From Octopus bimaculoides (Eukaryota), in contig NC_068986.1 of NCBI RefSeq assembly GCF_001194135.2, positions 45,252,979 through 45,316,978 of the forward strand: a stretch of 64,000 bases of DNA, given 5' to 3'. Below are positions 7,554 through 38,655 of the stretch, piece after piece. Positions within the stretch are counted from its first letter, which is position 1. Every line of letters begins with the position of its first letter. The notes under the pieces were generated by a model that searched no databases, was not told where the DNA came from, and saw only the letters and a program-made list of their open reading frames with translations. The position numbers were made by a program, and so were the translations under genes.

Positions 7554-10361
7554 TATATATACATATACTGTATATGCTGGTATATAATATGACTGAGTGC
7601 ATAAGACAACCCCAAGTTTTCCTGGAAAATAGCTTGAGTGGTGAAGGTACGAGGTTCTTGTTTATCGGTGAGCTGCAGCTTCCCCAGCAGCCCCTGATAT
7701 CTCTACTTTTCTTGTATTTCAATAGCATTTTAAGTATGTTTCAATCAGTAAATTCTGCAGTCTTGGTTGCTGAAAATTTATTCAGTTCTTTTTTAAAAAG
7801 TAGTCAAATATTATAAATTACCTACTATAATACACATCAAATGGTGTAATCACTACCCTAGTGATGTCACTTAGACGTCACTTATTTTACAGGAACTAAC
7901 ATGGTGTCAAGTACACCATAATAACACCATCTATTTGAAATGAATTTACAAGTTTACTTACAGTATGTATCATATTGTAATATATTAGAAATGTTGTTAT
8001 AAAGTACACTGCTAGTATTTTCTTTAATTTGTAAATTTTGTCTTGCTTCATGAGACCATTGGTCTTGAAACAGCGTATCCATTTTGATGCTGCTCACAGA
8101 CCATGTCTGTTACATACTTATCTAGAATTGGTCAGTCTGCAATGCCTCCTCTCATTGTACATTTTGTCCTGGGTACATTCCTTAATAGGTCTTAATTTAA
8201 TCTCCAAATTCTTACCATCTTCTCAGTTACACTGTATTCTCTTGCAGTAGCATAATTGTGGTAATTGGTGTATGCTACCACTTTCAGCTTAAAACCAGCT
8301 TCATATTTCCTTCATTTATCACTTGGAGCCATGAGGGAGGTTTTACAGTCGCTGGAAATTAATGTTCACCCAGTGAGAGTACTACTGCTTATGAAAGAGT
8401 GACAACTTGAGCCTTTTCAAGAAACCCTGTCTGTAAACATTTAAAAGTAAGGTTTATTGTGATTGGTCTGACCGACACAAACTGGCCAGTCACAGAAGGT
8501 ACTGATACATGCTGCTAATCTGCCATATGAAGTAGGTTAGTTACTGTAAACTACACTTGTTCTGAAAGCCCTCGGATGGTTGGGCGCTATATGAGAGAGA
8601 GCACTCTAAGGAAGCAGTGTAAACAGAACAGACCTGGGACATGGTTGAATGGGCTGATTGTTTACATTTTCTGTTTGCCAGCTGTTGCAAATGGTGACTG
8701 GTGTCTGTCCACTAAGATTGCTGTGCTGTTATTTTAATATAATTTTTATATTAATCCAGCTTCTCAAACATACATGTCAGTATCAGTAGAAAATACTGAG
8801 TTGTACAACCATAAGATCTATGTGAATGTTTTACGGTGTTCTTCATCGATTTGTCCAAGTATCAGTAGAAAATACTGTGCTGTAGGACCATAGGATCTAT
8901 GCAACTGCTTTATATTGTTTTCCATTGCCATTGGTGCTACTTTAAACCACAGGAAGTTATGGTTCAGATTTTATATGGAGTATATAAAACGACCCCCTAG
9001 TTTTGGGGTGATTTTTTTTAAAGTTCAAATTCAGTCCTGTAAGCCAGTGTATATATATATATAATTTAGAGAAAAGAACCAAAGTTCATGAATTCATCCA
9101 TGAAAATCCAGTCACATACAGAAAAAAATTAATAAGTAAATACACGATAAATAAGTATAATAAAATACAAAGTAAAAATAATAAAATAATAATAATAATA
9201 TATACACACATGGTCTGATCAAAAAGTATCTGGACTGTTGCCATAGTAACAAAGTTAAAGCACAAAGAGTGAAGCCATTTGTCAAAGACTGAACTTGAAT
9301 TCTGCTGTGCATGTGCAACTTCTGCTGTTTACAACAGTGCTTAGAAAGAAGGTGTATAGTGTGTGATCATTGCATTGACCATGACAGAGAAAGTTGTCAT
9401 GGCGGTACCTGCTCAGAGGCCTGTGCAAAGTTGAAGAAAGTGTATGAATCGCAGACATTTCGAAGATGGCCAAATAAATGTCAATATTGATGAACGTTCT
9501 GGGAGATCTGCAACCACCAGAACTGAGAAGAACATCATAGATGTGTGCACAGCTGTGAGGGGAAATCGTTGAATCACCATCTGTGAGTTATCAGAGGATG
9601 TGCAGATTAGTTATGGTTCAGTCCATTATCACTGAAGATTTGGGTATGATATGCATGTCTGCCAAGTTTGTGCCAAAACTGCTCTCAGCTGACCAAAAGG
9701 ACACTCAGGTTTCAGTTGCACAAGACTCCTTGGCTGTATCAAGAGGAAAACTTTTTGAAAACTTTGCTTAGGCCTCTGAGCAGGTATTGCCAAGCTTTTG
9801 GCAAATTTTGCTGCAGATTCTCTACTCAACTTTCTCTGTCATGGTCAATGTGACGATTACACACTACACACTTCCTTCCAAACACTGCTGTAAACAGCAG
9901 AAGTGAGCTAGAATGTTTAAACTTAGGTCAATCTTTGCCAAGTGGTTTCACTCTGTGTGGTTTAGCTTCGTTATTATGGCAACAGTCCGGATACTCATTG
10001 ATCAGACTAGGTATACATATATATGTGTGTGTGTATGTGTGATTGTAGAAGGAATATTCACAGGACTATATTGTTTATAGTAGAAGGATTCTCAGTGTTG
10101 CATGGGAAAATAAACAACTCAATTTTTGGTCAATAACTTGAATTCAAACCAGGTAATTTTGCATAAATTCATAATTTCATAGACATTATTTTCTTTGTTT
10201 TATTCATAACAGAAATAAATTTTAAAAAAATTATTGTAACATCTTTAAATTTTACTTGTATTTCAATAATTCACTATCAAAGAAGATACAACAGAGGTAT
10301 TTCAACCATGCCAATCTAGTCAATATATATATAGAGAGAGAGCATATCAGAATATAATATG

Positions 10362-10411
<50 letters not shown>

Positions 10412-13400
10412 CATATATGTAATAAATCGCCATTTGTGTGGTGTACCATGAGAATCAAAGCAATGACTTACATTTTTAATATGCTCTTGCAGATTTGAAC
10501 ACAAATATGTTAATTGCTGATGTGCTTCATCAGAGGTGAACAATTATTTCCCAACAAATGTGTATTCATAACACTTTTGATTCATTACCATAAGGGGAGA
10601 CACCAGGTGTTTTGACGTTGTTCTGTCTCATCAGCCAAAGCTATTGCAAACTAATTAATCTAACAAGAATTTGTGGCTCTTGTTTATAATTTCAGCATGC
10701 TTCAGCAATTAATTTATAATTGCTGAAGCATGATGATATCTGTTAACTAGTAATAAATCATCCTGTGCACAGTAAAAAAAATGACTTACAGATCTGTTCT
10801 TAATCCAGTCCAATCCAATCCAATCTAATCCAATCTGTCTGTTCATCTGTCTGTCTGTCTATCCATCTTTCTATTCATCTATCTATCTATTTGTTTCTCT
10901 CTATACATATGTATATACAGCCCAACCCATACTCGCATGGAAAGTAAATATCAAATGATGATGATGACGATATTGTATATATCATTTAATTCATATAGAA
11001 TATATATAAATTATATATCAGCTGATGTATGTGCATGTATGTGTGTATGAATATGTGTATGTATCTTTCCACAAAGGAAGATGTTGGTATATACAGGAAA
11101 GTGGTTTACCTTAACCTATACAGTGTTGGCTAAAAGTCTATTCTGCAGCACATTATATATATATAATGCCAACCACTTTACAGAGTGTGCCGGGTGCTTT
11201 CATGTGGAACCACACAGGTGCTTTTATGTGGCACCAGCATCGACTCTTGTAGGTCAATCCTCTCCACCAGGCTGACCGGGTTTAACACTTTTGCCATGGA
11301 GTGCAGGTCTTCTTGAGTTGAGCAAGGCACCAGGCATCCTGGTCTTTTGTCATCTTGCCTGAAAGGTTCAGCATCCTGAGATCATTCTTCAGTAATTCAG
11401 CCCATCTCTTCCTGGGTCTCCCACTTCCACATGTTCCATCTACTTTTAGAGATCAGTACTTCTTTATGGAGCTGTTGGCATCCATCTGTATCACATGACC
11501 AAACCAGCACAGTCTTCTTTCTTGCACACAGCATCTAATTCCTCTTATACCTAACTTCTCTCTTAATACACTAGAACTCTGTCGAATATAAACACTTACA
11601 TTACACATCCAGCAGAGCACACGAGCCTCATTGGTTCACATTAAAAGTAATTACAATAGAATCTGTCACTATTTAACCTATGATTTAAGTTTTTATTGCA
11701 AGCATTCAATCAAGATGGGGTAACTGATATAAGTGAAGAATGCTCAAATACTTATATACTTATACAGTGAAGGATATTTGGTAAGTGCAGATTTTTTGAC
11801 AAGTATCTGTTATGGAACTGGATCACATCACCTTCAGTAGACTGAAAAAGGGTATTTTACCTGAAATCATCATCATTTTAATGTTGACTTTGCCATGGCC
11901 ACAAAGGATGGATGAAATTTAACGAGGTGGATTTAATGGGTTTTCCTGTTGCCAACCCTCATCTGTTTCCAAGTAAGGTAATATTTCCTCATGATCAGAA
12001 ATGTTATTCATGGAAGACTGTAAATGAAGTACACTGCTTACAGCCATTACATAATGTCAAGGCACATAAACACACACACACACATGATGAGTGACTTTCA
12101 GTTTGTGTTCACAAAGTCCATTTACAAGGGCTTGGTTGGTCAGAGGGTATCATAGAAGACACTTGATCAAGGTTGCTATGCTGTGAGACTGAACCTGAAA
12201 CCATGCGTTTGGGATGCAAGCTTCTTACCACATGGCCATGCCTGGACTAAATATTTTTGAAGTAATACTTCAATAACTTTATTATTGTTGATACTTGATG
12301 TTTAACCTGCATTGCTATAGTCTTCTATAACATACAGATTTTATACCTAATATACAATGCTTCAAGCAAACTTCAACACTGATATTTTTTAAAATTTTGT
12401 TCCTATGGCTGGATGCCTTCCTTAACAACACTTTACAGAATGTACTGGGTGCTTTTGTGTGGCACTAGCATTAGAGAGGTGTCATGTCATCAATAAGACT
12501 AAAGAGTCCTCACAACTTACACTTTGTGTCTACTGGGTATGTTTTTTGAGGCACCAGCATTAGAGAGGCAGCTATGTCCTCAACATGATTGAAAGAACAG
12601 ATGAAGAATTAATATCATTACATATAATAAATATTTTGTTTTTGGATTTGGTTTGCAACATTTTTTATGTGATTTTGTGTGTTGAAACATATTCTGTTGT
12701 GTCTGGGGAGAGTCATTTTCTTATTGTGCCTTAAAATTTAACACACTCACCAAGTGGAAATTTTACCGGTAAGTGTGTTAAATTTTAAGGCACAATAAGA
12801 AAATGATGCTCCCCAGACACAACAAAATATAATAAATATATATTAAGTAAAAGATTTCAGTTTCAAATGAGTATACATGCACAGGTGTATACATATAAAT
12901 GCACTATCAATATAGTACAATGACAAAAACACAACATCTATTTGGTTCTTTTCTAGAAAATATCATTATTTCAGATAAATTTGTTCTTTATTTGTTTTCA
13001 GTTCTGAAAAGATGATAAACAGAAGTATGCTTTGGATAACTTACCACAATTTCTTCATTTTGTGCTTTTATAGTGGCATCAAAAACAGATGTTCTGAGAT
13101 GTTCATGGTGTGTTGCTGAAGAAAGAAATAAAATTTTGACTGTATTGTTCCATCAAAGAACCATTGCATATGCTTTCTTCTTCAGGTTAACTCTATTATT
13201 CAAAATGGTCAAATCTGAAAGCTATATTTGTTCAAATAGTCATATCTAGTTTTGCAGATAATGTATCACGAAATTATTCTTTTATTCTTTTACTTGTTTC
13301 AGTCTTTTGACTGCAGCCATGCTGGAGCACTGCCTTAGAGTGTTTTAGTTGAACTAATCGACCCCAGAACTTAATTTTTTTTAAGCTTAGTACTCATTCT

Positions 13401-16400
13401 TTTGATCTCTTTTACCAAACCGCCAAGTTACGGGGACGTAAACACACCAACACTGGTTGTCAAATGGTGATGGGGGACAAACACAAAGACACACATAGGT
13501 ATATACACATATATGACAGGCTCTTTTCAGTTTCCATCTACCAAATCCACTTACAAGGCTTTGGTCAGCCCGAGGCTATAGTAAAAGACACTTGTACAAG
13601 GTGCCACACAGTGGAACTGAACCTGGAACCATGTGGTTGGGAAGCAAGCTTCTTACCACACAGCCATGCCTAGTTTATATTTGTCTCGTAAATTTCTCAT
13701 TTTTATATCTATATACCATTGATATTAAGAATGTTAAAAATTTACAAAATATTTTGTTTTGTTTATTGCCAGATTAATCTGATTAAACAGAGCAATAATC
13801 AAAAACAATCCAGCTGTGATCATCTTGTATATTCATAAAAACAGTTTGGTTTGAAATGAGGGAAATTTGGTTGCTATTTCTTGAATGATCACATAAGGGG
13901 ATCTGCATTGGTGAAGCCTATCATTATTTTGTCAGTTTTTATTTTATATGCATAGGTGCCTGTAATATGATGGCTTCATTCAAATCCAGTATGAAGTAGC
14001 TATTTATCATACATCTATTAAACATACCATAATCTTCAAGAGGTATTTGGGTCATTACTTCATGCCATGTGTCAAGCACAAATCAGCATTGTGGGCCCAA
14101 CATTTTCAAAGCTATTGACTATAGTCAGAAATTGCTGGCACTAGAAATAAGAAAAGTGAAATGACTCAACCAAAAATTGAAACTGAATTGTAGATTCAGC
14201 TTTCTTGGAGATTACCACTATCCTATATCATTCACAAAAATGAACATAAAACAAACATTTTATTACTGCCAAAACATATTCATTATATGAAAACAGTTCT
14301 CACATGAGACAAAAACTTACATTGTAATGTGAACCAGCATTACTTTCTATTTTACTCTTTTTATTCTATACAGAAAAAAAAAAAAATTTACCTAGACGAT
14401 TGTTGACGAAAGGATCTTTAATGCTAAATGGATAGGATTCCTTTTGACCTCGAAATATCCGTTCTGCAAGAACTTTTTGTTCCATCTGCAAAAATATTAG
14501 GAAAATATTTAATGATGCGATGTAACACATTGACAACAATTACAGAAAAATTTTTCATCCCAGTAATCACTGACACTATCAGTATCATCTTTTGCCTTAG
14601 TATCCATTTGTTCATATAGGTGTCTTAAACTACAACCTAAGCATTTCTCCATTGTATTCATCCATTAAAAAAAATGTTAAAATTATTTTGTATGCCACAT
14701 ATATCTAAGCTTTTTACTAATTAATCTTAATTGGACTAGTCAATATATATTTCTTTATCATTTCAATTACATATTTTTTTTAGATCGTATGTTCTCCAGT
14801 TATCATCAGGTGATATTATACACATGCGTGCACACACACTACTTCAGATTAGGATTACAACAGTGTGTGACACATAAAATTTATATGCTATTCTCCTGCA
14901 ATGCCAGTATGTTCCAGTCTTTCATATTTAAACATATTTTAATAAACTTATACCACTGTCTAAAATTATAGTATGTTTAATAGATGTGTGATAAATAGCT
15001 ATTTCATACTGGATTTGAATGAAGCCATCATATTACAGGCACCTATGCATATGAAATAAAAACTGAAAAAATAATCATGGGCTTCACCATGTGATCATTC
15101 AAGAAATAGCAGTTCATTTAAACTAAGTTTTTATGGTGCTTCGTTTTCCATGATAGAAATCTTATTTGAGAATGGCATAGATTTTACATTTTTATTCCAG
15201 TTAATTTATTCCAGTCTTGACCTCTCATCAGAACTTTCCAATGTTTTTTAAATCCTTAATTTTTGGCATTATTCTGTTTCATCATTTGACAAATGTATTA
15301 TCTTTTACTTGTTGCAGACACTGGGCTCGAGCACCACCTTGAAGGAAATCACTCAAACAAATCAACCCCAGTACTTATTTTTACGCCTGGTACTTACTTT
15401 ATCAGACCATTTTGCTGAATTGCTAGTTATAGGGTATATAAACAAATGAACACCAGTTATCATATGGGATGCATGAGTGTGGGGAGCAAAGATAGACACA
15501 AATATACATATACACATACACATATGGTGGGGTTCTCCACATTTTCCATCTACCAAATTCACTCACAAGGCATTATTTGGCCTGGGGTTATTGTTGGAAA
15601 CACTTGTTAAGGGTGCCATATGATGGGACTGTTCTGAAACCACTATGTGGTTGCAAAGTAAGCTTCCACAAACGTAAGTGCAGGAATGAAGTTTGCTTAG
15701 GAGTGCAAACCCAGTTTTCAGGAGAATGTTCAAAGTTTTTCATCAACCTCAGAAACTCCTGGATTCATTTTTATCCCATGAAAATATTCTTAGTCAGTCC
15801 ACCCACTTCTCCCTTTAACTCTCCCCTTCTTGCATTACTTTTTCAGAGAATCATCATGGCTTCTTATCTTGGAAATAAATTTACTGTTTCTCAGAGAATA
15901 AGGAAGAAAACTATATTAATCTTACCTGAGTTTTTCTTTCGTTAGAAATACTACGACAATATTTCAACACCATATTTCTCATACATAGTTTACACAGCAG
16001 TGTAGACGTCTATGAACAAAAGCATAGTTAAAGTAATAGTTTATAGAATTAAGAGAAAATGTTCTGCAATAAAATCAATCAAATAATTTTGAAGATTAAT
16101 GTGATATCTTGCATGTATGTTAAGATATCTAGAATTATAGAGGTCTCAATAGTTCATCATCACCACCACACTGTATGTATCTGCCTCAACATACACACAA
16201 TTTTTAAGCAAATGTAAACTAAAATCTAACTTAGGTGGGTAATAAAACTTATTTTTACAGGTTACTATTTAAGAAAAAAATAACACACAAGCTTACCTTT
16301 TGAAGTAATTCTGGACATGGAGGCCAGGATTTATCTAAAACAGATTTTGGCAGCTTTGTTTTCAGTCTCTGAAGATAGTTATATTTAGTATATTGAACAA

Positions 16401-19400
16401 ATTCTTGATTTTCCTTACACACTGGTTTTTTGCGGTACATGAAACCTTTGATGAATCTAAAAACACAAAGCAGAATCACTGGTTAGCACAAATTGAAGAC
16501 ATTCTGAAGGAATCAATGACAAGGTTAGACGAATGCATTTATGTGAAAAAGAGCATAGCAATGAGACATCCTTTATCATTTACATAAAATATATTGAACT
16601 TATACCCAATGGATTAAGAAGAATATATTTGTCATTAAGACTTTGATAGAGAAAAAGTCATACATCAATTATTTAACTGATTGTGAAAATAAAATTACAT
16701 GCATAATGTACCTTTAAAGTAAAATGGGGAAAAATTTCAATAAAAAAATGTTTGTAGAAGTGACATTTTTGAGGACCAAATCTACATTTCTGGCAGGCAT
16801 AGCTCTCTGTTAAAAAAAATTCTTTGATCATCTGTAAAATTTTGTCTACCTTCTCTAAACATTATCACAAGTGTGTCCACATCCTAGAAACTTGCTTGCT
16901 TTATATCACTTCCACTTAACTCTTTTGAAACCAACCTTCCTGAAACTTACTCTGGTTAATATTCTAAAGTATTCATAAATTAAAAAAAAAAACAAGAAAA
17001 AACCCTTCCATCTTAATTTTATGTATGAATGTTTTGTTGTATTCCAAATATAAATTTAATAACAACAAAGTTAATTATTTTACTAAATCCCTCAAAATCT
17101 GTTAAAACATATATTACATCAGAATGGTCACAAAGGAGTTATACAAATATATCATACCTGTCTATGTTTCTTTTATCACTCATATTGTACACATATACTA
17201 AACCTTAGGTCTGTTTTGAGTTAACTAGGAGACATCTATGCCATCATATATCATCTTAAAATTGCAGCCAAGCACCCCTTGAATCACACCCTATTTTCTT
17301 AAATACAAAAGGATAGACTAGATAATGTAGTTCCTAATATAACAAGTCAACTGGATGGTTATAGCTAGAATACCTTTGATAATATACAAGCTTGATCAAG
17401 GTTGAGTTAGGGCTACAAAGCAACTACACCCAATCTTCATCATAATAAGTGTATCTCTCCAGAAGTTAGCCCCATCCCATGTTTTCTCCTTGCTACACAA
17501 CAATTCAAACTAATCTCTATATATGTTAACCACGGAGAATGATTTACCTTCAAGAAGAGTTTCTAGAACTTTGAGTTCCAACTATTTCTCCAATACCGAA
17601 AGTGATTTAACAACATGGACTTACTTGCGAATGATTTGTGTAGCTCTCTTTCGACGTTCCAACAATTTCCGGGCCAAGATTTGTCGTATCCAGCATTGCA
17701 ATACAATAGCTAAAATATAACAAATCAGAAGATTGTTAAATGCTTATTTATTAGCTTCACAAAATAATAAAAGACACCTTAAAGTTCAGTGAGTAAATTA
17801 CAAATTTAGAACCATGCAGGGTTTATTTTTAAGGCATAGTTGAGTGATTAAGAAGCTCACTTTGCAACCATATGGTTTTAGATTCAGTCCCATATACATA
17901 TACCCAGGCCTATTCCCCATTTTTTATTTAGGAGTGGGTAGCCACAATAAGACACACATCAGGCATTCTATTCATTTCCGGGGTATGACTATAAACCATA
18001 TCTGGTAGTGGGACCCTAGGGTCCTGGTTTCAGGGTCTAAGGAGTGTAGTTAAAGCCGTTGCCCGGGGCGTGGGGCTGTTGCATACAAATAGCTATTAGA
18101 AGTCACAAGTGAGAGCTGAGTGCAGGTGGGGACCAAAGCAGATCAACTACTCCGAGGTGGAGCACGACTGTTGCCCCGTCAGAGGTACTACCCCTCCCGT
18201 ACACCCCTCTTAGCCACTTTTGTTCTCAGGTCTACTCTGGCCTGGAGTGGTAGCACCTGTAAGGGTCCCAGCTATGGGTTAACTAGCAAACCCCACTGTG
18301 ACTGGGGAGTGGGAATCAGTAGAATGCAGTCATCGTATTCCCTGCATGATGTAAGAGGTGACTAAAAGGGGCTGGAGCCAGGGGGCTGGGAATCCTCTCC
18401 TCCTAGTAAATCCATAGTCTTAAAAAGATGGCAAGAAAAGAAAAATACTTCAGAATATTTCAAATGTTTCTAAAAGAATTAAAAGATGATCTTAAGCAGT
18501 TGTATTTATGCTTACATCAAAGCTAATATTTTTGCATTAAGATCATAAGCAGTGAAGATTTTCAAGAGTTATATATCATCTAATGTGTTTATTAGGCTTG
18601 CATACCAAAGATTTAATAATTGCTACAAACTTGCACCTGACTTTTGAAAAAATAATATATTTCTATCATAGGTAATTTTCTAATTTAGTAATCATCATAG
18701 ACTATTTGAGAACTTAATGTTATTCATGAAGAAATCTCACTAAATATTTCTCTTTTAGTAAGACAACTATACTGAGCAAATTTATAATTCATAAGTTTTC
18801 ACACAAGATTTCCATATAATATTGACTCAGTTCTGCTTTCATGGAAAGTTGAATAAATGTAAGTTGAAAAACATAAATGGTATCGAAAGAACGAAAATAG
18901 TTTACCTGAGAATCGTAATTTCTTGTAGATCTGTTGTTGCCTGTAGCCCTTAAACTTAGCTTGAATTTGTGTAGCTGAAAAAATAAATAAAATATATGAT
19001 AAGGTTTAAGAGATAAATAATATATCAGATAAAGTTTTATCATCACCAAGGATCAGATATTAGACATGATTCATGAGGTAAGGGCTGTCATAAATCTGCC
19101 ACACAGAGGAGATGAGTGAAATTTAGTGAATTGATACATACTTTAAAGTTAGACATTAGTGTATTGTAAGAAATCTCAGGAAGGATAAGAATTCTAAAAA
19201 ACAGTTATCATCAGAATATTGCAGATTCAGGAAAGAAACATATTATGTTGTTGTCATCATCATTTAACGTCTACAATTTTATTCTTGCATAAGTCAAATG
19301 GAATCTGTTGAGGCAGATTTTCTATGATCAGATGCCTTCTTGTTGCCAATCACCACTTGTTTCCAAGCAAAGTAATATTTCCCATAGCTTTGGTCAGTCC

Positions 19401-20114
19401 AAGGCTATAATAGAAGATACATGCCTAGGATGCTCTGCAGGGGGACTGAACCTGAGACCACATGGTTGGGAAGCAAGCTTCTCAACCACATAGACATGTC
19501 TATGTCTCATATAAATGGTAAATAGAAACACAGCTGCATCAGCTGAATCTAAGGGGAGGTGCAAACCACAAAAGAAAAAAAAAACAGAAAAAACATTCTG
19601 AAGATTAAAGTGAATTATGTCTGTTTTAGAAGAGACAGAAACGAAACAAAATCACAAGGTAAAGACTGGAGTTTTCCAAAAGGCAGGTTTGTTGATTTGC
19701 ATGTGATTTGAGATGTCAGTGATCAAAGCATCTGCACCATCTCAGAGTTGTGCTTATAGTAGGAGATAGCTAACCTTTGTAAGAGTGATAATATGGTTCC
19801 AGAACTGAGGTATTTCTTGGCTTTAAGGAGAAAATACCAAGTGTCTTAGATGCAGTTCTGGCAATGCTAAGAATGTTTGGTTTTGAACTAAGCTTAATAG
19901 GGATGGTAAGTAGTAGCATATGTGTGTGCATGTGTGTGTGTGTGTAAATATGATGAAGATAATTAGTAAAGTTGGCAGTAGTTAACAAGTCTGTGTGCTA
20001 TTTCTGTCTTTGAAATTAGTATTATTTATATTTTATGTCATTAAAAGTTATCAGATTGTAACATCTCCATTGGTGCTTGAAATGAGTACTGTGTGTGAGT
20101 ATATATATATATAT

Positions 20115-23100: not shown

Positions 23101-23308
23101 CTATAAGAGGTGGTATTCAAACCATTGCATTAATTTAGGGTCTGGAGAGCGAAAGAAAAGCCTATGATTATATCCTGCTTACCAACCACATGGTTCCGGG
23201 TTCATTCCCACTGCATGGCTCCTTGGGCAAGTGTCTTCTACTATAGCTTCAGGCTGACCAAAGCCTTGTGAGTGGATTTGGTAGACGGAAACTGAAAGAA
23301 GCCCGTCG

Positions 23309-23345
<37 letters not shown>

Positions 23346-23649
23346 TTGTCTCCCCAATATCGCTTGACAACTGATGCTGGTGTGTTTAAGTCCCCATAAC
23401 TTAGCGGTTCAGCAAAAGAGACCGATAGAATAAGTACTAGGCTTACAAAGAATAAGTCCTGGGGTCGGTTTGCTCGACTAATGGCGGTGCTCCAGCATGG
23501 CCGCAGTCAAATGACTGAAACAAGNNNNNNNNNNTTCCGGGTTCATTCCCACTGCATGGCTCCTTGGGCAAGTGTCTTCTACTATAGCTTCAGGCTGACC
23601 AAAGCCTTGTGAGTGGATTTGGTAGACGGAAACTGAAAGAAGCCCGTCG

Positions 23650-23686
<37 letters not shown>

Positions 23687-24704
23687 TTGTCTCCCCAATA
23701 TCGCTTGACAACTGATGCTGGTGTGTTTAAGTCCCCATAACTTAGCGGTTCAGCAAAAGAGACCGATAGAATAAGTACTAGGCTTACAAAGAATAAGTCC
23801 TGGGGTCGGTTTGCTCGACTAATGGCGGTGCTCCAGCATGGCCGCAGTCAAATGACTGAAACAAGTAAAAGAGTAAAAAGGGTAGAGTATAACCTCACAG
23901 TTCACTCGAATTTTGAAATGACACCTTCTCCACTCCCAGGTCCCAAAAGCATCTAATGCTAACTTGCAAAATTCTTCTTGGAGACACCTGAGGTTGTTTA
24001 CACCCCCATCCATACAAAATGCTGGTTGAGTCAGAGAAAGAAGAGCAATGCTCATGATTTCTTCAGTATTTCAATTCCTTGACTATAAGGGAAAGGGAGG
24101 AGTTATATTTAGAGTAACATTCAGTTTGAATGCTTGCAGCTGAGTGGGCTCTGCTAAATGTACTAGAGAACCAGATGATGGTGACAAATTTAGGTCTCCC
24201 ACCCAAGAACATGTGCAGTCCAAATGACAGACTTCCGCACAGTTTACAGCCCTCCACCCTACCCCAGCCGTGGGTTGACCTGAAGCTATGGATAGAATGT
24301 AAAATCATGCAACTGAAAAGTGAATTTCTCAAATACACAGCCAAGCCTCTTCACACTTCAGTTTCCTGCTTGTAAAGAACAAACACCAGATCTTCAGAGA
24401 GTGCCAACAAGAGATTGGCAGCTTATCTAAGGTGGGATTTATCTCATCTTTTCATAAGTTTTTTTTTGTTTTTCTTTTTTAGTTGCTTATGAAGATATTC
24501 ATATTTACAATTTTTAAATTATTAGAAATTCGAGTGTTCAGTAATTATAAATATTTGTATAAGTTCCTGCAGTTTCTGTTTACCAAATTCTTTCACAAAG
24601 CATTGGTTGGCCTCAGGCTATAATAGGAGACACTTGCTTAAGTGCTGTGCAGTGGGACTAAGCCTGAAACCATTTGGTTTCAAAAGGAGCTTAAACACAC
24701 AGCT

Positions 24705-24742: not shown

Positions 24743-27700
24743 TGGGGGAGGGGATGCTGCAAGTAGCAGTGTCATTATAAAATTAAATGAATTTTCCCTT
24801 GCAGTGGCAATAATGACAATGAGATGAGGTGGAAGAAAAGGAAAAGAAAAGAAGAGAAGGGGAGGTCAGAAGAATAAGCCTAAGTAGAACTAGCTACAAT
24901 GACATCATGTCCAACCTTCTCAAATAGTCCTGAGAAGCATTTGCTTTTATAAAGAAACAATAAGATTTTAGTTTTAACCAAGGATAAATTACCTAAACAA
25001 TACCAGTTCGAACTTTTATCAATGATCAACTTTAGTTATTTGAGAAAGAACATAGGAGACCAGGATGCAAAATTTTTTTTCCCACAAGAGTTCCGGACCC
25101 CAGTTATGAACTCATTTGCATACAGCCAATCACAGCTCAACTAACAAACTAGTGTCCACCTAGTCACGAAAATACTCTAGTTGAGTTTAGTGGAAAATGT
25201 GCGTTATAGCAAAATCTAACTGTTCTAAATGGGTTAACAGGAGTAGCAAATGTGAAATTTAGTGTACAGAGTGAATGGAGAGCTGCTCACCGATGATGCC
25301 ATAAGTGTTGCCAATTTGTGTAATTTACTAGAAAATGTAAATGTGTGTAGTTTCCTAATTTTTTGACAGATTTATACATTCCTAATTTAAAATGTTGGTG
25401 TTTATCTAGAAACATCTTAATCAATATGGCGTTGTGTCATATTGCGCCCTCCTTGCATATATCAATGGGTACATGCAGTATCACTAATCTCAGTCTGAGC
25501 ATAGGTACCTAATGTTAGTTCCATATGCAATTGATCGATGAGGATGGGGTGGGGTGGGAATGTGGTGTTTATGTGTGACCTGTTATGCTGTATTCACAGA
25601 GTGGCATACACCATTCTATGCCTGACTGACTGTTCTGTAGTACTACACAGTATGTGGATTTTAAAGGTAAGCTCTGATTGGCTGTATGCAAATGAGTTCA
25701 TTACTGTGGTCTGGAACTCTTGTGAGAAAAAAAAAAATTTGTGACCAGGACATCAGCATTAGCAGTAGAGGCAGGAAAAACAGGAGTGAAAATTGAACTC
25801 ACTTTAAAATCATGTTCAGCTCACCTATTGAAATCAATCTGTGCTTTGGATTTTGTCTGCCTTTTTTTTATTTTCAGAGAGAATGTTTTTATTTTGTCTT
25901 TACACAAAAACTGTAATTTTTTTGTCAACTTATGGTTATATTTGGGGGTGGTCATATTTTTTGCCAATTAACCACACAAACTATATATACGTTCTTCACT
26001 TCAGCTTTATTATTATTATTTTAGTGTCCTTTGAAATTTTTCATCACACCTCCTGTGACCTCTTCAGTAACTCTCCACCCTCATGTCTCCTGTTCTGTTT
26101 AGTCCATTCTCCATTCCAAATTTTTTGTCAACATATTTACAATAAAGAAATGATTAAAAAAGCTTGTCAGACCACATCATGGTCCCAACAAACAAAAGAA
26201 AAGATGTCCCAGAAGATGGTGAAGGAGATGTGCTGGGAAAAACTAATTGACTCATGGGGCTCACACTTACGGATAGCCATCTCTGTTCCAACAGCAATGA
26301 GCAAGAATATGGTCCAGGGTCAAAGAAAGCCGGAGATCTTCACCACCACAGGTTTGACCATAAACCTGTCAGTATATTATGTTTCTTTTCCCCAGTTATT
26401 CTATTAATCTTTTTTGTCACAATGTTGAAAAAACATTGAAGGTGGCGAGGAGTGACTGTGTGGTAAGTAGCTTGCTTACCAACCACATGGTTCCAGGTTC
26501 ATTCCCACTGCGTGGCACCTTGGGTAAGTGTTTTCTACTATAGCCTCGGGCCGACCAAAGCCTTGTGAATGGATTTGGTAGACGGAAAGTGAAAGAAGCC
26601 TGTCGTATATATGTATATGTTTGTGTGTCTGTGTTTGTCCCCACAACATCGCTTGACAACCGATGGTGATGTGTTTAGGTCCCCGTAACTTAGCAGTTCG
26701 GCAAAAAAGACCGATAGAATAAGTACTAGGCATCCAAAGAATAAGTCCTGGGTTCGATTTTCTCGACTAAAAGGCGGTGCTCCAGCATAGCCGCAGTCAA
26801 ATGACTGANNNNNNNNNNNNNNNNNNNNNNNNNNNNNNNNNNNNNNNNNNNNNNNNNNNNNNNNNNNNNNNNNNNNNNNNNNNNNNNNNNNNNNNNNNNN
26901 NNNNNNNNNNNNNNNNNNNNNNNNNNNNNNNNNNNNNNNNNNNNNNNNNNNNNNNNNNNNNNNNNNNNNNNNNNNNNNNNNNNNNNNNNNNNNNNNNNNN
27001 NNNNNNNNNNNNNNNNNNNNNNNNNNNNNNNNNNNNNNNNNNNNATTCCGGTTTAAGCACCCCTCATAACATTTTCATTCTTTGGAATTTTCAGAAAAGT
27101 TTTGTGAATCTGTGTTCTACTCATGGGAATTCATACAATTGGGAGAGAAAAAAAAAGACAATTAGAAAAACATTTTTTAAACTAATCCCGCCTCCATAAA
27201 TCTTAAAATTACCACTCTTTTTCGAATTAAAAAAAAAATCAAACTTTAAAATAAAGACTGAATTTTTTGCTTAAATCCCAGCAATGGACCATTAAATGTG
27301 CTTATGGAATGGAAAATATTGAAAAACATCAATACATACCAGAGAGAGGGGGAGAGAGAGAGAAATGAGGAAGGTATCAGGTGGTTGTGAGAGGTGCTAA
27401 AAATAACCGCTAAATCACCCACAAACTTTTTTTTCGTAACTGTATGAATTCTCGTGTGTATAACACAAATTCAAAAAACAAATTTCTGAAAATTCCCAAA
27501 AAATAAATGTTATGAGGTGTTTAAATCTCATATGGGGTGCTTAAGCCAGAATTCTGCTAAAATATTGACAATCGAGGGCTGTCCTAAAAATATGAAACTA
27601 AATTGGGATAGAAACCGAGAATGACGACGTGAAAACCCATAAATCTTATATTAATAAACATGAAAACTATGCATAGAACCTATGTGCGTACATACAAGTT

Positions 27701-30700
27701 TTTTTCAAAGTCTTTGAACCTATTTTGTCACACATGCTCTTACAGATACGATTTAAATAAAGCATTACTCATTCCACATTGTCACCTGGATTTTTCTTGG
27801 CGAGTGTCCACCACTCTTCCTGTGTATGGATGTTCCCATCTTTAAATCAAGAAAATTTTGAAAAAAATGGTTCACACTATATATGTGGCCTTAACTAAGC
27901 TAACAAACCCATCCATCAGATACCAAACATGTTTCCGTGGCTTTTCACTTCTGTTACTTATTTAGGTATACTACTTTACAGCGGTGTACCTCATTTGCTA
28001 TTTCAGAAATGCCCATGCCCATCACTATAAGATACTACACAACAAGGAGCTGGTGTTTATGAAACTAAGGGATTTTAACTATTGTCACTTTCAGTGCAAT
28101 TTACTTTCACTTTTTTTACGGCACGAGACTGCATGTTTAACCAGAATGTTTTCGTTGTCATTCGACGCGCAAGAAAGAGGAGTTACACTTGTGCGTTGGG
28201 AAGTTGAGTTACGGATATTAGTCGCAAGAAGGAAGTCGAAATTTGTAATAATGAACAGGAACTGGGTTTCGAAGTTATTCTATTTATTTATTTTAGAGCA
28301 ATTTTGTAAACAGCATCGTTGGAAACAGGTTTTTTTTTTAAAGTCAATCACTGGTTCACTGCATTTACGATAGCAGGAGATGTCTAAAAGCACCGGTTTT
28401 CGGGTTTTCTTGCCAGTGTTGACAATTTTTCGTCAATATACATTGCTGAAAGATATACATATACTAGTGTATATAATAAGCACACAGACTTCCGCAGTTT
28501 CCGTCTACCAAATTCTGTACACTAAAGCATTAGCTAACTCTTGCCATAAGTGCTTACGTGATGGCAATGAATCCAGTATCAGGTGGTTGCGAAACGAGTT
28601 TGCAAAAACTTCGCGTCCGACTCGCTAATGCTTTATTAAACAACTACATTTTTCAATACGTGCGAACCCTTAATGTTGTTACTATAATTGTTAGCCCCGA
28701 GTCAATCTTGATTAAGCGGACCCATTATCAAAAGCATTGTTGCCTAGACCATCTCGTTTCTTCAGTGGAAATGGAGACGGTGTCCCATTTAAACTCGGTG
28801 CAGCCCGAATTTACACAGCCTGGCAGTCCCGTGTTACAAAATTACAACAGGTCTTATAAAAACTGAAGACATGAATGCCTTTCAGCTATTTTGAGGCCTC
28901 TGTGGATAGCTTGTTTAGTTTATGCCTAAATCTAACACTAAATGTAGGTAGGACATTTTCCAGTGTCATTTTTAAGTTCAAGACAGTCGAGTGTGATTTT
29001 TAGATACAGGCAGTTTCTCCTAGGTCGAGTGACTTCGACAGTTGAGCGTACTGAAACAGCGGTTACATCTCCCTTAAGTCAAAGCCCACTGCCTTGTTTT
29101 CAATTACATTTAAATATAATTGAAGACGAGGATGGATAAGAAGCCGAAGTTAACTTCGGCGGGATTCGAAACCCGAGGTGCAAAACGGGACGTGGAAATA
29201 AACTCTGAAAAATAGAGTAATATTTAAGAAAAAATGAAGTGAGAATGGACATGGCCGAACCATCTTTAGTCAGAGCTCGTTTAAGTCTAAATAAGTTCGC
29301 AACATCATTATCAGTAGATGAATAGAATACCGAATAAAATGCATTACAGTATTTCGTAGTGTATCGTAACTCACATACATACTTCCGGGTGTGATGAAAT
29401 GTATTACATGAAAAGCCTATTCTAATTGATGTCTCATTGTGAACGTTGCCGGTTATAATCTAAGCAGACTTTCCCGTAGAGATATTCTAATGCGACCTTC
29501 AGAATTTGTATATTTCTATACAACTATGACTAATTGTTTATAATACGGAATAGGGGATGGTGGTTTAGACAATTAAATCGACCTCAGTATTTCACTGGTA
29601 CTTAATTTATCCACCCTGGAGGTATAAAAAGTAATACTAGCCATCAGCGGGATATGAACTTGAATAGAAAGAACTGGAGGAAAATACCGTAAAGTATTTT
29701 TTTCCGCCTCTGTAAACGATTCTGTATATCTAACACCAAATTACTAATACTACTACAAAAATAATAATGGTTTCTGATTTAGATGTATGTTCATTAGTCG
29801 ATTACAGATGCGACAACGGTAAATTTATGATCGTAATGTTTGAATCTATCGGTATTGTTTTTAACCACGGGAAGCTTGTGATTAAACACGTTCATTCAAT
29901 CTTTAATTTAAACATAGTATATCTATTACCTCATTATTCATTAAGATTTTTTTTCTTTTCCGTTTACTTTATTTATTTTCTCTGAAGACGATAATGTGTG
30001 ATTAGAGAAAGATTTGACTGCTATTTCTACTTCCTCGAGCGACCATATAAAAAATCTCGTTGAATTGTGGTCTCCCTTGTATGAATAATAGGAAATACCC
30101 CACCACCACTTATGGAAGCAGATGAATGACTAAGTCACGTAGCAAGTATAAACTTTATCAGAAGAAATGAAAGGAATAATAAATGGAAAGAAAAGTAGTA
30201 TTTTATTAAATATACATTTAAATAAACCTTACATTTGTTACATTACTATATACATACATATGCATAAACTCCCGCACATAGGCATGTAGATAGATAGACA
30301 GATAGATAGGAGCAGGTGTGAGTGTTTTAAAGAAGTTTGCTTTCCAACAACATGGTTTCAGGCTCAGTCCTACGCCACTTTGAGCAACTGTCTTTTACTT
30401 ACTCACCAAAGCCTTGATGAAAACTGGAAGAAGCCTTGCATATGTATGTGTGTAATGTTTGTCTCTTTGTCTTGACATCGCACGATAGTTGTGAATGAAT
30501 ATCACTGTAAAAATAATGCCCCCCCCCCACGCACACACCATAGGGTAACATTACCTTGCTTGGAAACAGGCCGTAGAAAATCTATGCAGTCCGACCCATG
30601 CAAGCAGGGAAAAATGTATGTTTAAAACGATGATAATGACGGTGGTGTATATACGTACAAATGTGTATATAATGCATGCCCACCTTTATAAATTATACAC

Positions 30701-33700
30701 ATGAATAATCCCTCTTTCTCTGTCTCATATACATACATATTATACATTAATTTTATTCGAATTATTTTACTGTTTATTGTTTTGTTTAATAGCACTTTAC
30801 AATTTCCCCTTCAAAGAAAACCGTGATTATCAATGTGTCATATTTTAAAATAATTTCTTTTACTAACAACGATTCTTTAAAGAAAAAAAAATCATGTAAT
30901 CCTGTGAACTAATTGTTCCCGATACAGTTAAATCGGGTTTTCCCCCCTTTTATAATAGCGCCAACTGTTAATTCATTCATTTTACAAAAGGTACTAATAC
31001 AAACAAGGGAGTTTCTACGATTGCTAGAAACAATAGTCAAATTTTCATTAAATCGCACGCTTCCCTTTAAGACAGATGACATCAAAAACTACGTTGGATA
31101 ATATAGTATTAAACGCTCTGTCAGAAAATTCACGAGATGGTTACGACTAGAATGCTTTTGAACATAGGTTAATCAATTAGGGCCGGCTAAGGAACAACAG
31201 TTAACATCACGTGATTTAGTCTTTTACCTTCGTAAGACAATGAGGAAGGGGAATTACCTATATAAACTAAGTGAGGGAGGATCCACGCGGTTGAAATTGA
31301 AGAAAAAAGCTATAATGTGGAAGATCGCCGCACACACACACAGATACGGGTTATTTAAATGTACATGTGCGGTGTGTGTATTTATCAGTCACAAAGTTGA
31401 GATTTTCGGTCGATTGACTTGCAATCACGTGGTAACTCAACATGCTAGAATTGGCAACCAAATCTTCCACAAAACACCTTGTCTTAAATTGTAAGAACTG
31501 CGACTGCGGAACACACGAAAGTGAAAGTAGCATGTTGTATTCAAAGATCTCCGTAATCCTAGATATATCTAAATACACGATGAATATGTTTGGAACACTT
31601 GATAATTTCTGTTTAATCGATCAGGGCTGACCTAGGAGTCCATGCTGGGAGTAAAAAATGACAGTTCGAGTCAAAATATAGTGTTTGTCGTACGTCGCTA
31701 GGAATACCTATTTTAAGTTAATTTCTTATTGTCTAAAAATAGCAATGAAATGTATCAATAGAATTATTATTACAAACAATAATCCATTTCAAGGTAATAA
31801 CTTGATAGGATCACTAACTTTGCCGGGCAAAATACATCTCAAGGATCGCTAGATTGGCGGGCAAATTATCCTGCAATTCTCCTTTCCTTATATTCCGATA
31901 TGAAATCTTACTAAGGGATTTGTATTCAACTACTGACTTGATTTAATCAACTATATCCTCCCACAAAATTGTTAGACTAGAAGGATGTCTATTAAGAGTC
32001 GTTTTACTTGTTAAGAACCAAATTGAACGTGGATCAGTTTCTGTCCGCGGGAAGAATGAAATAGAAATAAAAATAACGACTTTAAATTGAAATCGTTCAG
32101 TTTAACACACACACTTTTTTTTCTTTGACGCCGTTGTTTCTGTAGTAACCCCATAATTTAGGCGCCGAAATAGAAAATTTCTAAAATTGGAAATAAACGC
32201 TTTGACTCCTTTCACATGCGTGGATTCGAGTGTACAAACGCGCGAAAACATGCGTCTTTCTGAAGGTGTTCGAACCGCGTTGAGTCTCATCTTTTAAAAG
32301 CTTTCCAAACGCGACCATCCCGTCCTGTAAAAAGAAAGTGTTCAAATTGTGCCCACAACTTTTTGTTTAGCCCAAATCTCCATACCCAACCATCGTTTTG
32401 GTTGACCTTAACGCCTTCCTTTGATTAGAGATCTACGGCATCAAAGCTGATTTGGCGGCTTAACAAAAATGACGACTAGCGATAAATTCGTGTATGTGCC
32501 TGTACAGCTGTTATCCGGCTATATTCCTTGTCACTTTCGTAGTTAAAATTCATTAAACATTATTTTAAATAAGATCTGAAAAGCAAAAGATGGATAATCA
32601 CGTGTAGAATGCCTTTGGTCATATGACTACCTAGATCAGAGCTGACCAACAACTACGGGCTGATACATCTCATCTGACGGGGAATTCTACTGTCACCACT
32701 CAGTCTGCTAGAAATAACAGCCAAATCATTACTGAAACGCCTTTCATTATACAAGCCTGTTGGATCAAGGATGACTAAAGCCTTATCAACAATAACAACA
32801 ACAGACAAAAACTATGCAGAAGTAGGGGAGATTCGTCAAGACAGATCGTGTGATCGCGTAATGGGATCCTCGTTCGCTGAGATTAAGTTTGTCGCCAGTT
32901 ATAGTCGTTTCGGCATTCCAGCTACGACCATCCCATTTTGTTTTTTCAGGCAATCGTATTATTTGAAATATGTCTGCTGTGTGTTATTATTTGTTTTTTA
33001 GTATTTCTAAGGAATGTAACTTGTTTCTAATATATTGGGTGACAATAGTACATACGCACGCGCGCACATATACAATCATAACACTATTTTGCGGTTCGTT
33101 GTTATTATTTAACTCCAGGTCAACTTTGATCGGGCAGACTTAAGATCGAAAACATTCCACATATGACCATCCCATGATTAAAGCATAACCCGGACTACAT
33201 TATTCAATGTCTTGAAGAAAAAAAAAAGTGTGAGACAAGGGAGATTTTAGCTTAAAAAAAGTGAGATGGTCACGGTTTTAAACGTGGAATGGACATGGAA
33301 CACTTTTAAAACAGAGATTGGCTGGTCGGTTTTAAACGTGGAATGGACACGGAACACTTTTCGAAGAGGAATGGATGTTCACGATTGGACCGCCTTTATA
33401 AAAATGCAGTCGCGCGTCGACACATTTCCGAGCCTTCTGTTATTTGTCTTCTCAGTTTGCACACTGGTCCGTGCACTGAATTGACTTCTTCAACCTCAGA
33501 GAACCTCCAGCACCCGAGGGTTCTCCATACAACCTGAATGCATGGAGAACTTGGAGTGCCGGACACCAGAATTCCTTCCGCACTCTGACTGGTATAGTTC
33601 AAAGGAGTGAAGATCAATGCGTTTAGCACAAGCTTCTCAAAGTAGTGTCCAGTAGATCATCAGACTGTCATTCCCCACTCCAGATTTAAAAGTTTTACTC

Positions 33701-36700: not shown

Positions 36701-38655
36701 TGAATATAGAAAAACTAATGTCATATATTTTGAGGAGAAAGCGTGAGAAATTATAATATTTATACCTTTTCTAAAGTTGTGAATTACGTGAAAACATTCA
36801 AATTAAGCTACACCAGCTGGTAATCTAGGTGGTGCAGCTTAATAGGATTATCTAATTGCATTTTTCATGTAATATTATATGTGAACGTGTTAATACGCTT
36901 GAAACAATATTCTATGGTAAATAATTACCTAATCAGCAAAATTATAGTTTAAAATTACTGAATGTCACACAAGTTATGATTAAAATAGATTGTTGCAATT
37001 ATAAATTAAGACAGGAATAAAAATTAAGAAATATAGAATCTATGATTCATAGCATTTTAATAAATCAAATATTTCATTGGCAAAAGTTTTCATTTTAAAA
37101 TTAATCTTGCTCTGATTGTAGTAATGCCATTTAACCCCAGTTTTGCATTGATTTAAGTGCACTGTCACACTAAATATAAACAGGGCTGCAGTAATAAATT
37201 AAGACAGCAATCAAAATTAAGAGATATGAAATCTATGAACCATGATGCTTTAATAGATTAAATATTTCATTGGAAATCGAACCTTAAATTTTTTTTTTAA
37301 ATTACTTTTGCTCTGAGAGTAGTACGCCATTTAACCACAGGTCTGCATTGATAGAAAGGACCATCCTGTCTTTTTTAAGAGTATTTAGGAATACATTATC
37401 CAATACGAACTTTCTATTTGCCAGGTGACAGTGTGTGATTAGAGGAACGTTTGACTGTCATTTTTAGCAAGCTGAGGGAGAACAATAAGATTCCTTTGTT
37501 GGTTTGCTTCTAGTAATATATCTGATATATTTTCTAGATGTAAACATAATGGGTTTTAGTTTATACAACTGGAAAATTTTTATATAAAAAAGAAATCTAT
37601 AATCTGAGTACAAGAGGCAAGCATTAAATAGAAAGTGATGAGCTATGGTGATATTCATTCTTTGATCTCATAGTTGAAACCACTCCATTTCATTTATATT
37701 ACTGATGGTTTAGAAAAAGCATCAACATCACAACACCACCATATTTTCAGGTGAATAATAATATTGCAATTATCTTCAATGATATGGTATGAATATAGAT
37801 ACTTTTAAGGTAAAGTCAAATAAATGTTGAAATATTGATTTCAAATTTTGGCACAAGGCCAGCAATTTCAGGGAGAGGTAAGTTGGTTACATCAATCCCC
37901 CAGTACTCAACTGGTACTTATTTTATTGACTCCTGAAAAGATGAAAAGCAAAGTTGATCTCAGCAGAATGTGAAGATGGATAAAATGCTGCTAAGCATTT
38001 TGCCTGGTGTGTTAACAATTTTGCCAGCTCATCACCTTTAAGTGTTGAAATAATATAAAAGAATACTATCCCAATTTTTTAGTTTGCTTTTTAAATTCAA
38101 TTAGTTTTCAGGTTGAAACTTCAAACCAAAAGAGGAGAGAATTGTATTGAATTTTAAAACTGATATGGAAAACCAAATGCAAATCTGAAATTTACTAAAA
38201 CAAATTGACTGTATTTAGCTTATATGCTTGTGATCTGTATTCAAATTAATTTTTTTATTTCATAATTTAAAACCTAACATTCAGTATAAATTGAATTTTC
38301 AAGTTTTGAATTTCCTTTCCAGATTCTGGAAAAATCTGAAAATTCAAACAACAAAACTAAAAAAAAAAGAAAGCCTGTTTAAATGAATTTGAATCAAAAT
38401 TTCCATCTCTGGACTAATGGCCTGTCTGTACTCAAATTATACAACTCTACACCATACCACTTAACACCAATAAAAGGCATATTACCAGATTGCTAATATA
38501 CACTCAATATTCCACACCATAAAATACAGGAGAAATTATATAGTTGCTTGACTTAACAGAAATAGCAGCAAAAATCTCTTCCAAACCCCTACCACCCCAT
38601 TACCCCATTACATTGTACAATCTAAACAAAGGACATATTGAATATTTAAGAAATA

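Follow-up and report, generated by a model that had tools for sequence, protein, structure and literature searches.

The window (the whole 64-kb stretch of Octopus bimaculoides DNA analysed here) carries exons of myosin-Ic on the minus strand. A 465-aa concatenate of the exon peptides gave, in a protein search, matches of at most 808 aa and at most 62% identity, none of them from a cephalopod; the gene was assigned with a 991-aa query (Tegillarca N-terminus plus the window exons), which matched O. bimaculoides myosin-Ic and its relatives. The myosin-Ic gene ranges are 100.6 kb in O. bimaculoides, 114.5 kb in O. sinensis, 117.7 kb in O. vulgaris, and 122.9 and 123.9 kb in Argonauta.

The exon at the centre of this report (14392 to 14485, minus strand) is 94 nt long, starts in phase 0 and ends in phase 1, has AG and GT splice sites, and codes for residues 830 to 860 of O. 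bimaculoides myosin-Ic, with its last nucleotide opening the codon that follows. Pfam Myosin_TH1 begins at residue 847 of that protein and thus within the exon, which bears out an earlier reading of the letters alone (the sequence-only reading) that had called it the first TH1 exon. A 57-aa open reading frame across the exon returned no homologous candidates in a protein homology search. The neighbouring exons lie at 15926 to 16009 upstream (minus strand; 84 nt, 28 residues, ending in phase 0) and at 13045 to 13115 downstream (minus strand; 71 nt, 24 residues), and their boundaries facing the 94-nt exon, the end at 15926 and the start at 13115, are those that the same reading had given. The upstream intron (14486 to 15925, minus strand, 1,440 nt) holds the right arm of an inverted repeat and an unrelated SINE copy at 15298 to 15666; the left arm lies in the downstream intron (13116 to 14391, minus strand, 1,276 nt), which likewise has an unrelated SINE copy, at 13280 to 13670. 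The two SINE copies are 68 to 72% alike and cannot pair with each other, because they lie in direct orientation. Their near-equal distances from the arms were considered as a possibly meaningful arrangement and rejected as a coincidence, given the direct orientation and the low similarity.

The same 94-nt exon, in the same phases as in octopus, was found in the abalone Haliotis (L001, 30588 to 30681), with no bracketing inverted repeat around it. The exon peptide also aligns with shark and coral myosin-I, and these matches together indicate that the exon is ancient.

The inverted repeat consists of a left arm at 13872 to 14036 and a right arm at 14962 to 15111 (neither with a strand of its own), with the 94-nt exon as the single exon between them, as had been proposed. 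In the minus-strand pre-mRNA, the right arm is the upstream one, in the intron 5' of the exon and 476 nt before its 3' splice site; the left arm is the downstream one, in the intron 3' of the exon and 355 nt after its 5' splice site. The arms match in two blocks, one of 128 nt (13909 to 14036 with 14962 to 15089; 94% complementary, 925 nt apart) and one of 23 nt (13872 to 13894 with 15089 to 15111; 100% complementary). Arm against arm, the similarity is 86% over 165 columns with the gap included (blastn, E ~1e-53). The near-perfect inverted repeat that the sequence-only reading had placed at 13872 to 14033 and 14965 to 15111 is therefore present there; it is genuine, lies far beyond chance, and is the longest and most perfect in the window at spacings of up to 5 kb. 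It also lies nearer to the exon than the other inverted pairs found in the window.

The two blocks are separated by a segment of about 15 nt that is found in the left arm only (~13894 to 13908; no strand). Because the segment has counterparts in further copies of the dispersed motif described below, the right arm has more likely lost it. The 10 mismatches between the arms comprise eight transitions and two transversions (gapped alignment). Beyond the blocks, gapped alignment extended the similarity in a ragged, indel-rich form outward to about 13834 and 15135 and inward to about 14046 and 14950; the outer extension of the left arm (13834 to 13871, no strand) resembles that of the right arm (15112 to 15135, no strand) only with indels. 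No similarity between the two sides was found past these ends, either in the 164-nt outer spacers or in the inner spacers.

The arms are composite. In each, the outer ~45 to 90 nt come from a short repeat that is dispersed in octopus, represented in the outer part of the left arm, from 13834 to about 13925 (no strand), by the motif ...ACAG..GTTT..AAATTTGGNTGCTATTTC[TAGCAGA]TTGAATGAYCACA. This motif had seven matches in the window against 0.11 expected, and alignments placed the repeat at seven to eight other sites in the 64 kb. Two of its copies, at 30012 (+) and 31463 (−), face inward about 1.45 kb apart. The motif at the arm ends is unclassified and may deserve the attention of a repeat annotator. 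Elsewhere in the window, nhmmer searches with the arms matched the dispersed core alone. The inner ~150 nt of the arms had no further copy in the 64-kb window by blastn or nhmmer, which confirms that their central part recurs nowhere else in it, and the inner ~120 to 150 nt were found in none of the seven to eight other motif copies. The arms also differ from the abundant ~370-bp SINE of the window, and that part of the sequence-only reading holds. Its further claim, that they look like a local duplication and not a pair of repeats, is only half right: the inner part is unique in the window, and the outer ~45 to 90 nt belong to the dispersed repeat.

The arms contained nothing coding and no known RNA family. 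Rfam gave nothing at the gathering score across the window; sub-threshold matches were confined to a TA-rich palindrome at 12695 to 12823, outside the arms. Exact-sequence look-ups of two open reading frames in or near the arms and of 10 long ones from the window found none, and for a 47-aa frame in the arm the only match among 1.84 billion representatives was a chance one, to a repeat-rich, bacterial-looking protein. DNA pattern scans for the arm core in metagenome contigs and for the motif in viral contigs returned no matches.

At the RNA level, the duplex between the arms (~150 bp) is predicted at −213.8 kcal/mol, and in the predicted fold of the full 1,281 nt the arms form one long stem, in agreement with the proposal that arm pairing loops out the exon. 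The 15-nt left-arm segment would be a 15-nt bulge of this stem. Neither arm alone folds better than its shuffles (z about −1 for both), so each has the other as its partner; the candidate reading of each arm as a hairpin or MITE in its own right was rejected on the same result. ADAR hyper-editing substrates call for two near-perfect complementary segments of ~100 bp or more, a few kb apart at most in one transcript; the arms, both intronic in the myosin-Ic pre-mRNA, have this geometry, and by these predictions a duplex typical of ADAR hyper-editing substrates should form.

Such a structure fits what is reported for this genome. Long dsRNA in animals reportedly stems mainly from inverted repetitive elements that lie near each other, and such neighbouring pairs also take most of the hyper-editing (PMC5625713). 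The share of loci in long near-perfect dsRNA is reported to be exceptionally high in O. bimaculoides (4.4e-3), and ADAR activity in octopus nervous tissue is very high (PMC5625713); octopus editing occurs mostly in hairpins of introns and 3'UTRs (PMC9699675). The present repeat alone takes up 4.7e-3 of the window. One inverted repeat that brackets an exon is unsurprising, because such repeats are reported to be exceptionally frequent in O. bimaculoides.

Skipping of the 94-nt exon would add 15 codons of the downstream exon in a new frame, followed by TAA at 13070 to 13068. This premature stop lies far upstream of later exon junctions, and nonsense-mediated decay (NMD) of the skip transcript is therefore expected; the frame shift and its consequence had been foreseen correctly. 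The regulated skipping that went with them showed no sign. The exon was present in all nine cephalopod products read (out of about 19 found), a weak test of isoform use, since isoforms removed by NMD are under-represented in assembled dominant isoforms and in annotations. These products were O. bimaculoides X1 and X3, O. sinensis X1, a 1,028-aa product common to O. vulgaris and O. sinensis X2, two from Argonauta, one Logan octopod transcript, and two decapodiform transcripts. Annotated isoforms differ solely in a 12-aa microexon, and an exact protein look-up found no record of the predicted skip product. From these products the 94-nt exon looks constitutive.

Back-splicing of the exon, which had also been suggested, is disfavoured. 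Complementary arms are present in both flanking introns (476 and 355 nt away), and the exon itself, at 94 nt, is outside the favourable length range. In the minigenes of Liang and Wilusz, exons of up to 400 nt circularised poorly or not at all, and single circularised exons are longer than average (PMC4201285). Circularisation is unlikely here because exons of this size circularise poorly, and octopus circRNAs are reported to be low overall (PMC9699675).

Taken together, we think that the inverted repeat is probably a by-product of genome turnover, with a normally spliced exon, an edited stem, and no dedicated switch. By this account, a non-coding unit of ~200 bp would have arisen in two copies in the cephalopod lineage, within two ancient introns. 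The copies would pair into a near-perfect stem of ~150 bp, as folding predicts, and loop out ~925 nt including the exon. Most likely, heavy A-to-I editing and unwinding of the stem would take place in the nucleus, and splicing would include the exon as usual in almost every transcript. Transcripts without the exon would be a small fraction at most; they would run into the stop 15 codons into the next exon, and be removed by NMD; circles of the 94-nt exon should be rare. As to origin, a single copying event may have placed an inverted second unit across the exon, or the unit may have been inserted twice as a composite repeat, and we weight one inverted duplication and two insertions about equally.

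Two independent insertions, by which the arms would be ~200-bp non-autonomous MITE- or SINE-like elements in opposite orientation in adjacent introns, are a substantial possibility that falls somewhat short of an even chance. Membership of the outer 45 to 90 nt of both arms in a dispersed family with seven to eight other copies in 64 kb points this way, as do the rough coincidence of the outer limit of arm similarity (~13834 to 13840) with the left boundary of that family and the part that neighbouring inverted repetitive elements reportedly play as the main long-dsRNA source in animals (PMC5625713). However, the inner ~120 to 150 nt are absent from all of those other copies, there is no other full arm copy in the window, and no target-site duplication was seen by eye around either arm. 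Two copies 1 kb apart, of a family otherwise absent from 64 kb, would moreover be an unlikely coincidence unless the genome-wide copy number is high. The whole of 13834 to 15135 might instead be one DNA transposon with terminal inverted repeats of ~200 bp, like the mariner-like element at 9198 to 10022. The architecture is similar (inverted ends of 100 to 200 nt with ~0.6 to 0.9 kb between them), the window holds other such elements, and the inward-facing motif pair at 30012 and 31463 is in keeping with it. This reading is effectively refuted by the conserved host exon, since an inserted element cannot have brought in an exon that matches abalone in position, length, and phase and is colinear with vertebrate and coral myosin-I. 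Repeat copies of the interior are absent from the rest of the window, and no target-site duplication flanks 13834 and 15135 (by eye, at fuzzy boundaries). We likewise give almost no credence to an artefact of assembly, whether by mis-joining of an inverted haplotig or by collapse of a read. The draft assembly does contain nine N runs and at least one obvious overlap artefact, a 331-bp, 100% identical duplicate on both sides of the gap at 23525 to 23534. That known artefact, however, is a direct, identical duplicate abutting a gap, unlike this inverted repeat, in which 10 substitutions and a 15-nt indel distinguish the arms, a correctly spliced exon sits in the 925 nt between them, and no gap lies within 5 kb (the closest N run is at 20315).

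The sequence-only reading proposed that the arms could act as a switch. In a regulated switch of this kind, their pairing would loop out the exon, and ADAR editing, temperature, or helicases would tune the shares of productive myosin-Ic mRNA and of frame-shifted mRNA that is degraded. The geometry is fitting, with a stem of −214 kcal/mol and arms that lie 355 nt from one splice site and 476 nt from the other, and skipping would lead to a premature stop. Intronic inverted Alu pairs can turn a nearby constitutive exon into an alternative one, so inverted intronic repeats are able to alter the splicing mode of an exon (PMC2533698), and octopus nervous tissue supplies the very high ADAR activity (PMC5625713). 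Against this, every cephalopod product read retains the exon and the skip product is without a record, and the abalone orthologue lacks the repeat despite an exon of identical length and phase. The arms resemble drifting neutral DNA in their 10 mismatches, their ragged ends, and the 15-nt indel between them, and their outer part is a dispersed repeat; the repeat density of the genome also makes chance bracketing of an exon likely (PMC5625713). We consider such a switch improbable. Still less credible, in our judgement, is its stronger form, in which an editing- or temperature-sensitive structure kept by selection sets the myosin-Ic dose in octopods through skipping and NMD.

The inverted repeat thus looks like one of the many dsRNA-forming repeats of the octopus genome. 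If the turnover account is right, it adds little, being one more of very many intronic inverted repeats of this kind in octopus; it shows how chance can place inverted arms around a frame-shifting constitutive exon. If condition-dependent skipping did occur, the locus would be a tractable, minigene-sized case in which a cephalopod sets the output of a motor-protein gene by intron structure together with ADAR editing. A structure kept by selection would be a cephalopod instance in which ADAR affects gene output via intron structure and not via recoding.

Among known systems, human intronic inverted Alus (IRAlus) are alike in that two short non-coding repeats lie in opposite orientation in one pre-mRNA and can pair; they form long imperfect dsRNA that is hyper-edited by ADAR (PMC2533698; PMC5625713). 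Unlike them, the octopus arms are no recognised high-copy SINE, with a dispersed repeat in the outer 45 to 90 nt only, and they measure ~150 to 165 nt against 300. The octopus copies also lie one on each side of the exon; in the human case that was tested, the intron upstream of the exon contained both. The ZKSCAN1, HIPK3, and Drosophila laccase2 minigenes resemble the locus in having complementary sequences in both introns, a few hundred nt from the splice sites, and in such minigenes intronic complementary sequences of 30 to 40 nt or more were used for circularisation (PMC4201285; PMC4617980). They differ in the exon, which is 94 nt in octopus, a size class (400 nt or less) that circularised poorly there.

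Pairing between the introns that flank an exon is also a feature of the Dscam docking and selector sites and of FGFR2 IAS2-ISAR, where intronic pairing across or near an exon decides its use. Those pairings involve short boxes that selection has preserved in different species, and they act on documented alternative exons, whereas the octopus exon looks constitutive, its arms look like drifting repeat DNA, and abalone is without the pairing. DNA transposons with terminal inverted repeats, such as the mariner-like element at 9198 to 10022, share inverted arms of ~100 to 200 nt that stand several hundred nt apart and are partly multi-copy; unlike them, the octopus unit has no target-site duplication that was found, and it encloses an ancient exon of its host.

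The myosin-Ic gene lies on the minus strand. Its exon peptides in the window match residues 392-955 of Octopus bimaculoides unconventional myosin-Ic isoform X1 (XP_052824673) exactly or almost exactly, with the few mismatches located at the ends of tblastn segments. The 94-nt exon at 14485-14392 (AG acceptor, GT donor, phase 0 to 1, residues 830-860) is preceded by an exon at 16009-15926 (84 nt, phase 0 at its end) and an intron of 1440 nt (15925-14486), and followed by an intron of 1276 nt (14391-13116) and an exon at 13115-13045 (71 nt), all on the minus strand. The upstream intron contains the right arm of an inverted repeat, and the downstream intron its left arm. The Pfam domain Myosin_TH1 begins at residue 847; the tail domain therefore starts in the bracketed exon, in agreement with a sequence-only reading of this DNA that had called it the first TH1 exon. 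That reading's frame argument also held: joining 15926 to 13115 gives a stop codon (TAA, 13070-13068), so far upstream of later exon junctions that NMD of the skipped mRNA is expected by the standard rule. Elsewhere in the gene, ORF fragments inside an intron (11150-11650, minus strand) resemble a retrotransposon protein in its C-terminal part.

The inverted repeat that had been noticed is present in the window sequence (13700-15300). Repeat searching resolved it into a main block (13909-14036 and 14962-15089, 128 nt, 94% complementary, 925 nt apart) and a second block (13872-13894 and 15089-15111, 23 nt, 100%), separated by ~15 nt (about 13894-13908) in the left arm only. The arms matched each other at 86% over 165 columns with the 15-nt gap counted (blastn, E about 1e-53); in the gapped alignment, 8 of the 10 mismatches were transitions, and a ragged, indel-containing likeness ran on to about 13834/15135 on the outer side and about 14046/14950 on the inner side. 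The spacers adjoining the arms, compared in both orientations, had nothing in common. No other inverted pair with arms up to 5 kb apart in the 64-kb window is as long or as perfect, and the closest assembly gap is at 20315. The only clear assembly artefact seen differs in type: a 10-N gap (23525-23534) is flanked by two direct copies of 331 bp that are 100% identical (23194-23524 and 23535-23865), an unmerged assembly overlap, not biology, with one SINE copy doubled. The inverted repeat is therefore real, and the geometry proposed for it is correct, with arms in the introns on both sides: 476 nt separate the end of the upstream arm from the 3' splice site of the bracketed exon, and 355 nt separate its 5' splice site from the start of the downstream arm.

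The arms were compared with the abundant SINE of the window (~370 bp, at least 17 copies), and this identity was rejected; the SINE copies just outside the arms (13280-13670 and 15298-15666) are directly oriented to each other and share only about 68-72% identity. For the inner ~150 nt, neither blastn nor nhmmer with a two-arm profile found a further copy in the window, as the sequence-only reading had stated for the arm centre; the outer part, however, does recur. Its pattern ATTTGGNTGCTATTTCTAG, allowing up to 3 mismatches, had seven matches in a pattern scan of the window (13865 and 30012 on the plus strand; 31445, 31733, 32708, 42036, and 59835 on the minus strand) versus 0.11 expected, and an additional copy was found near 38543-38573. 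Copies of this dispersed motif occupy 13848-13925, 30012-30060, 31415-31463, 31733-31751, 32680-32726, 38543-38573, 42001-42058, and 59800-59857; alignments gave a common block of about 45-90 nt (...ACAGG.GTTT....AATTTGGCTGCTATTTCTAGCAGATTGAGTGACCACAgAGAgaCTC...), with otherwise unique sequence around each copy; most copies run in the same sense as the myosin gene. The motif (...AATTTGGNTGCTATTTCTAGCAGATTGAGTGACCACA...) contains a small palindrome, CTGCTA-TTTC-TAGCAG. Relative to the other copies, both arms have a 7-nt deletion (TAGCAGA), and the extra 15 nt of the left arm aligns with those copies, which indicates loss in the right arm. The motif was not found in the myosin-Ic locus of the abalone Haliotis cracherodii, no Rfam family matched the motif or the arms, and the only ORF in the arms had no real relatives.

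The proposal of a local inverted duplication rather than a SINE pair thus stands as to the SINE, whereas its other half now shares about equal weight with an origin by two insertions. A single local event that duplicated, in inverted orientation, ~200 nt of intron sequence already holding an old motif copy would fit two copies 1 kb apart, the absence of the inner part from all 7-8 other motif copies, and the lack of target-site duplications seen by eye, but under random duplication it would be a coincidence that the outer limit of arm likeness falls within a few nucleotides of the start of the dispersed family. That limit instead favors two insertions of a composite repeat, and long double-stranded RNA (dsRNA) usually derives from repeat copies lying inverted near one another (PMC5625713); against this origin, the 64 kb holds no other full copy. 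The conserved exon inside 13834-15135 excludes one transposon covering that whole segment, although elements of similar shape, with long terminal inverted repeats, do exist in the window. One (9198-10022) is a nonautonomous mariner-like DNA transposon with ~98-nt terminal inverted repeats (82%), TA-rich flanks, and an interior that, read by eye, is a putative decayed transposase frame; the second (25073-25734) has 70-nt arms at 90% with 522 nt between them. A TA-rich near-perfect palindrome (12689-12830; 63-nt arms, 94%, 16-nt loop) had subthreshold Rfam matches to several plant and animal miRNA families and was rejected as an miRNA gene, the matches being a low-complexity effect.

The abalone locus has the same exon (30588-30681), exactly 94 nt long with identical boundaries and phase, and the boundaries of the following exon are also as in octopus; intron positions of myosin-Ic are deeply conserved across molluscs. 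The exon peptide also aligned colinearly with shark and coral myosin-I. The abalone introns flanking this exon have no bracketing inverted repeat, their sole inverted pair being 26 nt and entirely inside the upstream intron. The repeat was thus added to preexisting introns, somewhere in the cephalopod lineage, in which myosin-Ic loci span 100.6-123.9 kb (O. bimaculoides chromosome assembly, O. sinensis, O. vulgaris, and both Argonauta hians copies). Divergence between the arms (6%) is below that between SINE copies of the window (12-33%), but it is not a safe clock, since gene conversion between close inverted copies could preserve their likeness.

A structure- or editing-dependent switch on myosin-I output, as had been suggested, is a legitimate hypothesis that gained no support from anything testable here. 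Inverted intronic Alus can turn a nearby constitutive exon alternative (PMC2533698), and by analogy some skipping of the bracketed exon may occur. On the other side, all nine cephalopod products compared include the exon (O. bimaculoides X1 and X3, O. sinensis X1, a 1028-aa product common to O. vulgaris and O. sinensis X2, two from Argonauta, one Logan octopod transcript, and two decapodiform transcripts), and no match to the predicted skip product is on record; as a negative this is weak, since NMD-degraded isoforms are rarely assembled or annotated. The annotated isoforms differ only by a 36-nt microexon (1915-1880, minus strand, AG and GT splice sites; cluster listing), which encodes SGGEDDDPDYDK and explains the 1040-aa versus 1028-aa octopod isoforms. 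Decapodiform transcripts of 1037 aa and 1025 aa differ by a near-identical insert (SGGDDDDPDYDK), so the alternative microexon is conserved across coleoids. Nor is bracketing unique to the 94-nt exon: it recurs at lower quality around at least one other exon of the same gene (22188-22108), between an inverted SINE pair (19380-19475 and 23176-23271; 96 nt, 75%, 3.7 kb apart), to which the arm pair is by far superior. As for back-splicing, short inverted repeats were enough for circularization in minigenes, but exons no longer than 400 nt formed circles inefficiently or failed to do so (PMC4201285), which makes a 94-nt circle unlikely and disfavors that part of the proposal.

Pairing of the arms was predicted at -213.8 kcal/mol, with a 15-nt bulge and a few mismatches; they form one long stem in the minimum-energy fold of the 1281-nt segment, and neither arm is structured when folded alone. 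The arm pair is best read as an ordinary dsRNA-forming intronic inverted repeat of cephalopod-lineage origin, which would pair in the pre-mRNA, would probably be hyper-edited, and probably alters myosin-Ic output little. Its importance would rise only if skipping were substantial or conditional in RNA-seq or if the pairing were conserved across species. Editing in O. vulgaris is mostly in introns and 3'UTRs with hairpins, and circRNAs are low overall (PMC9699675). Across animals, the majority of hyper-editing occurs in long near-perfect intramolecular duplexes from neighboring inverted repeats; the O. bimaculoides signal is among the two strongest of the species examined, and the share of loci lying in such structures, 4.4e-3, is exceptionally high (PMC5625713). 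The arm pair alone accounts for 300 of the 64000 bases of the window (4.7e-3), a density equal to the genome average, and is one more instance of a well-known kind.
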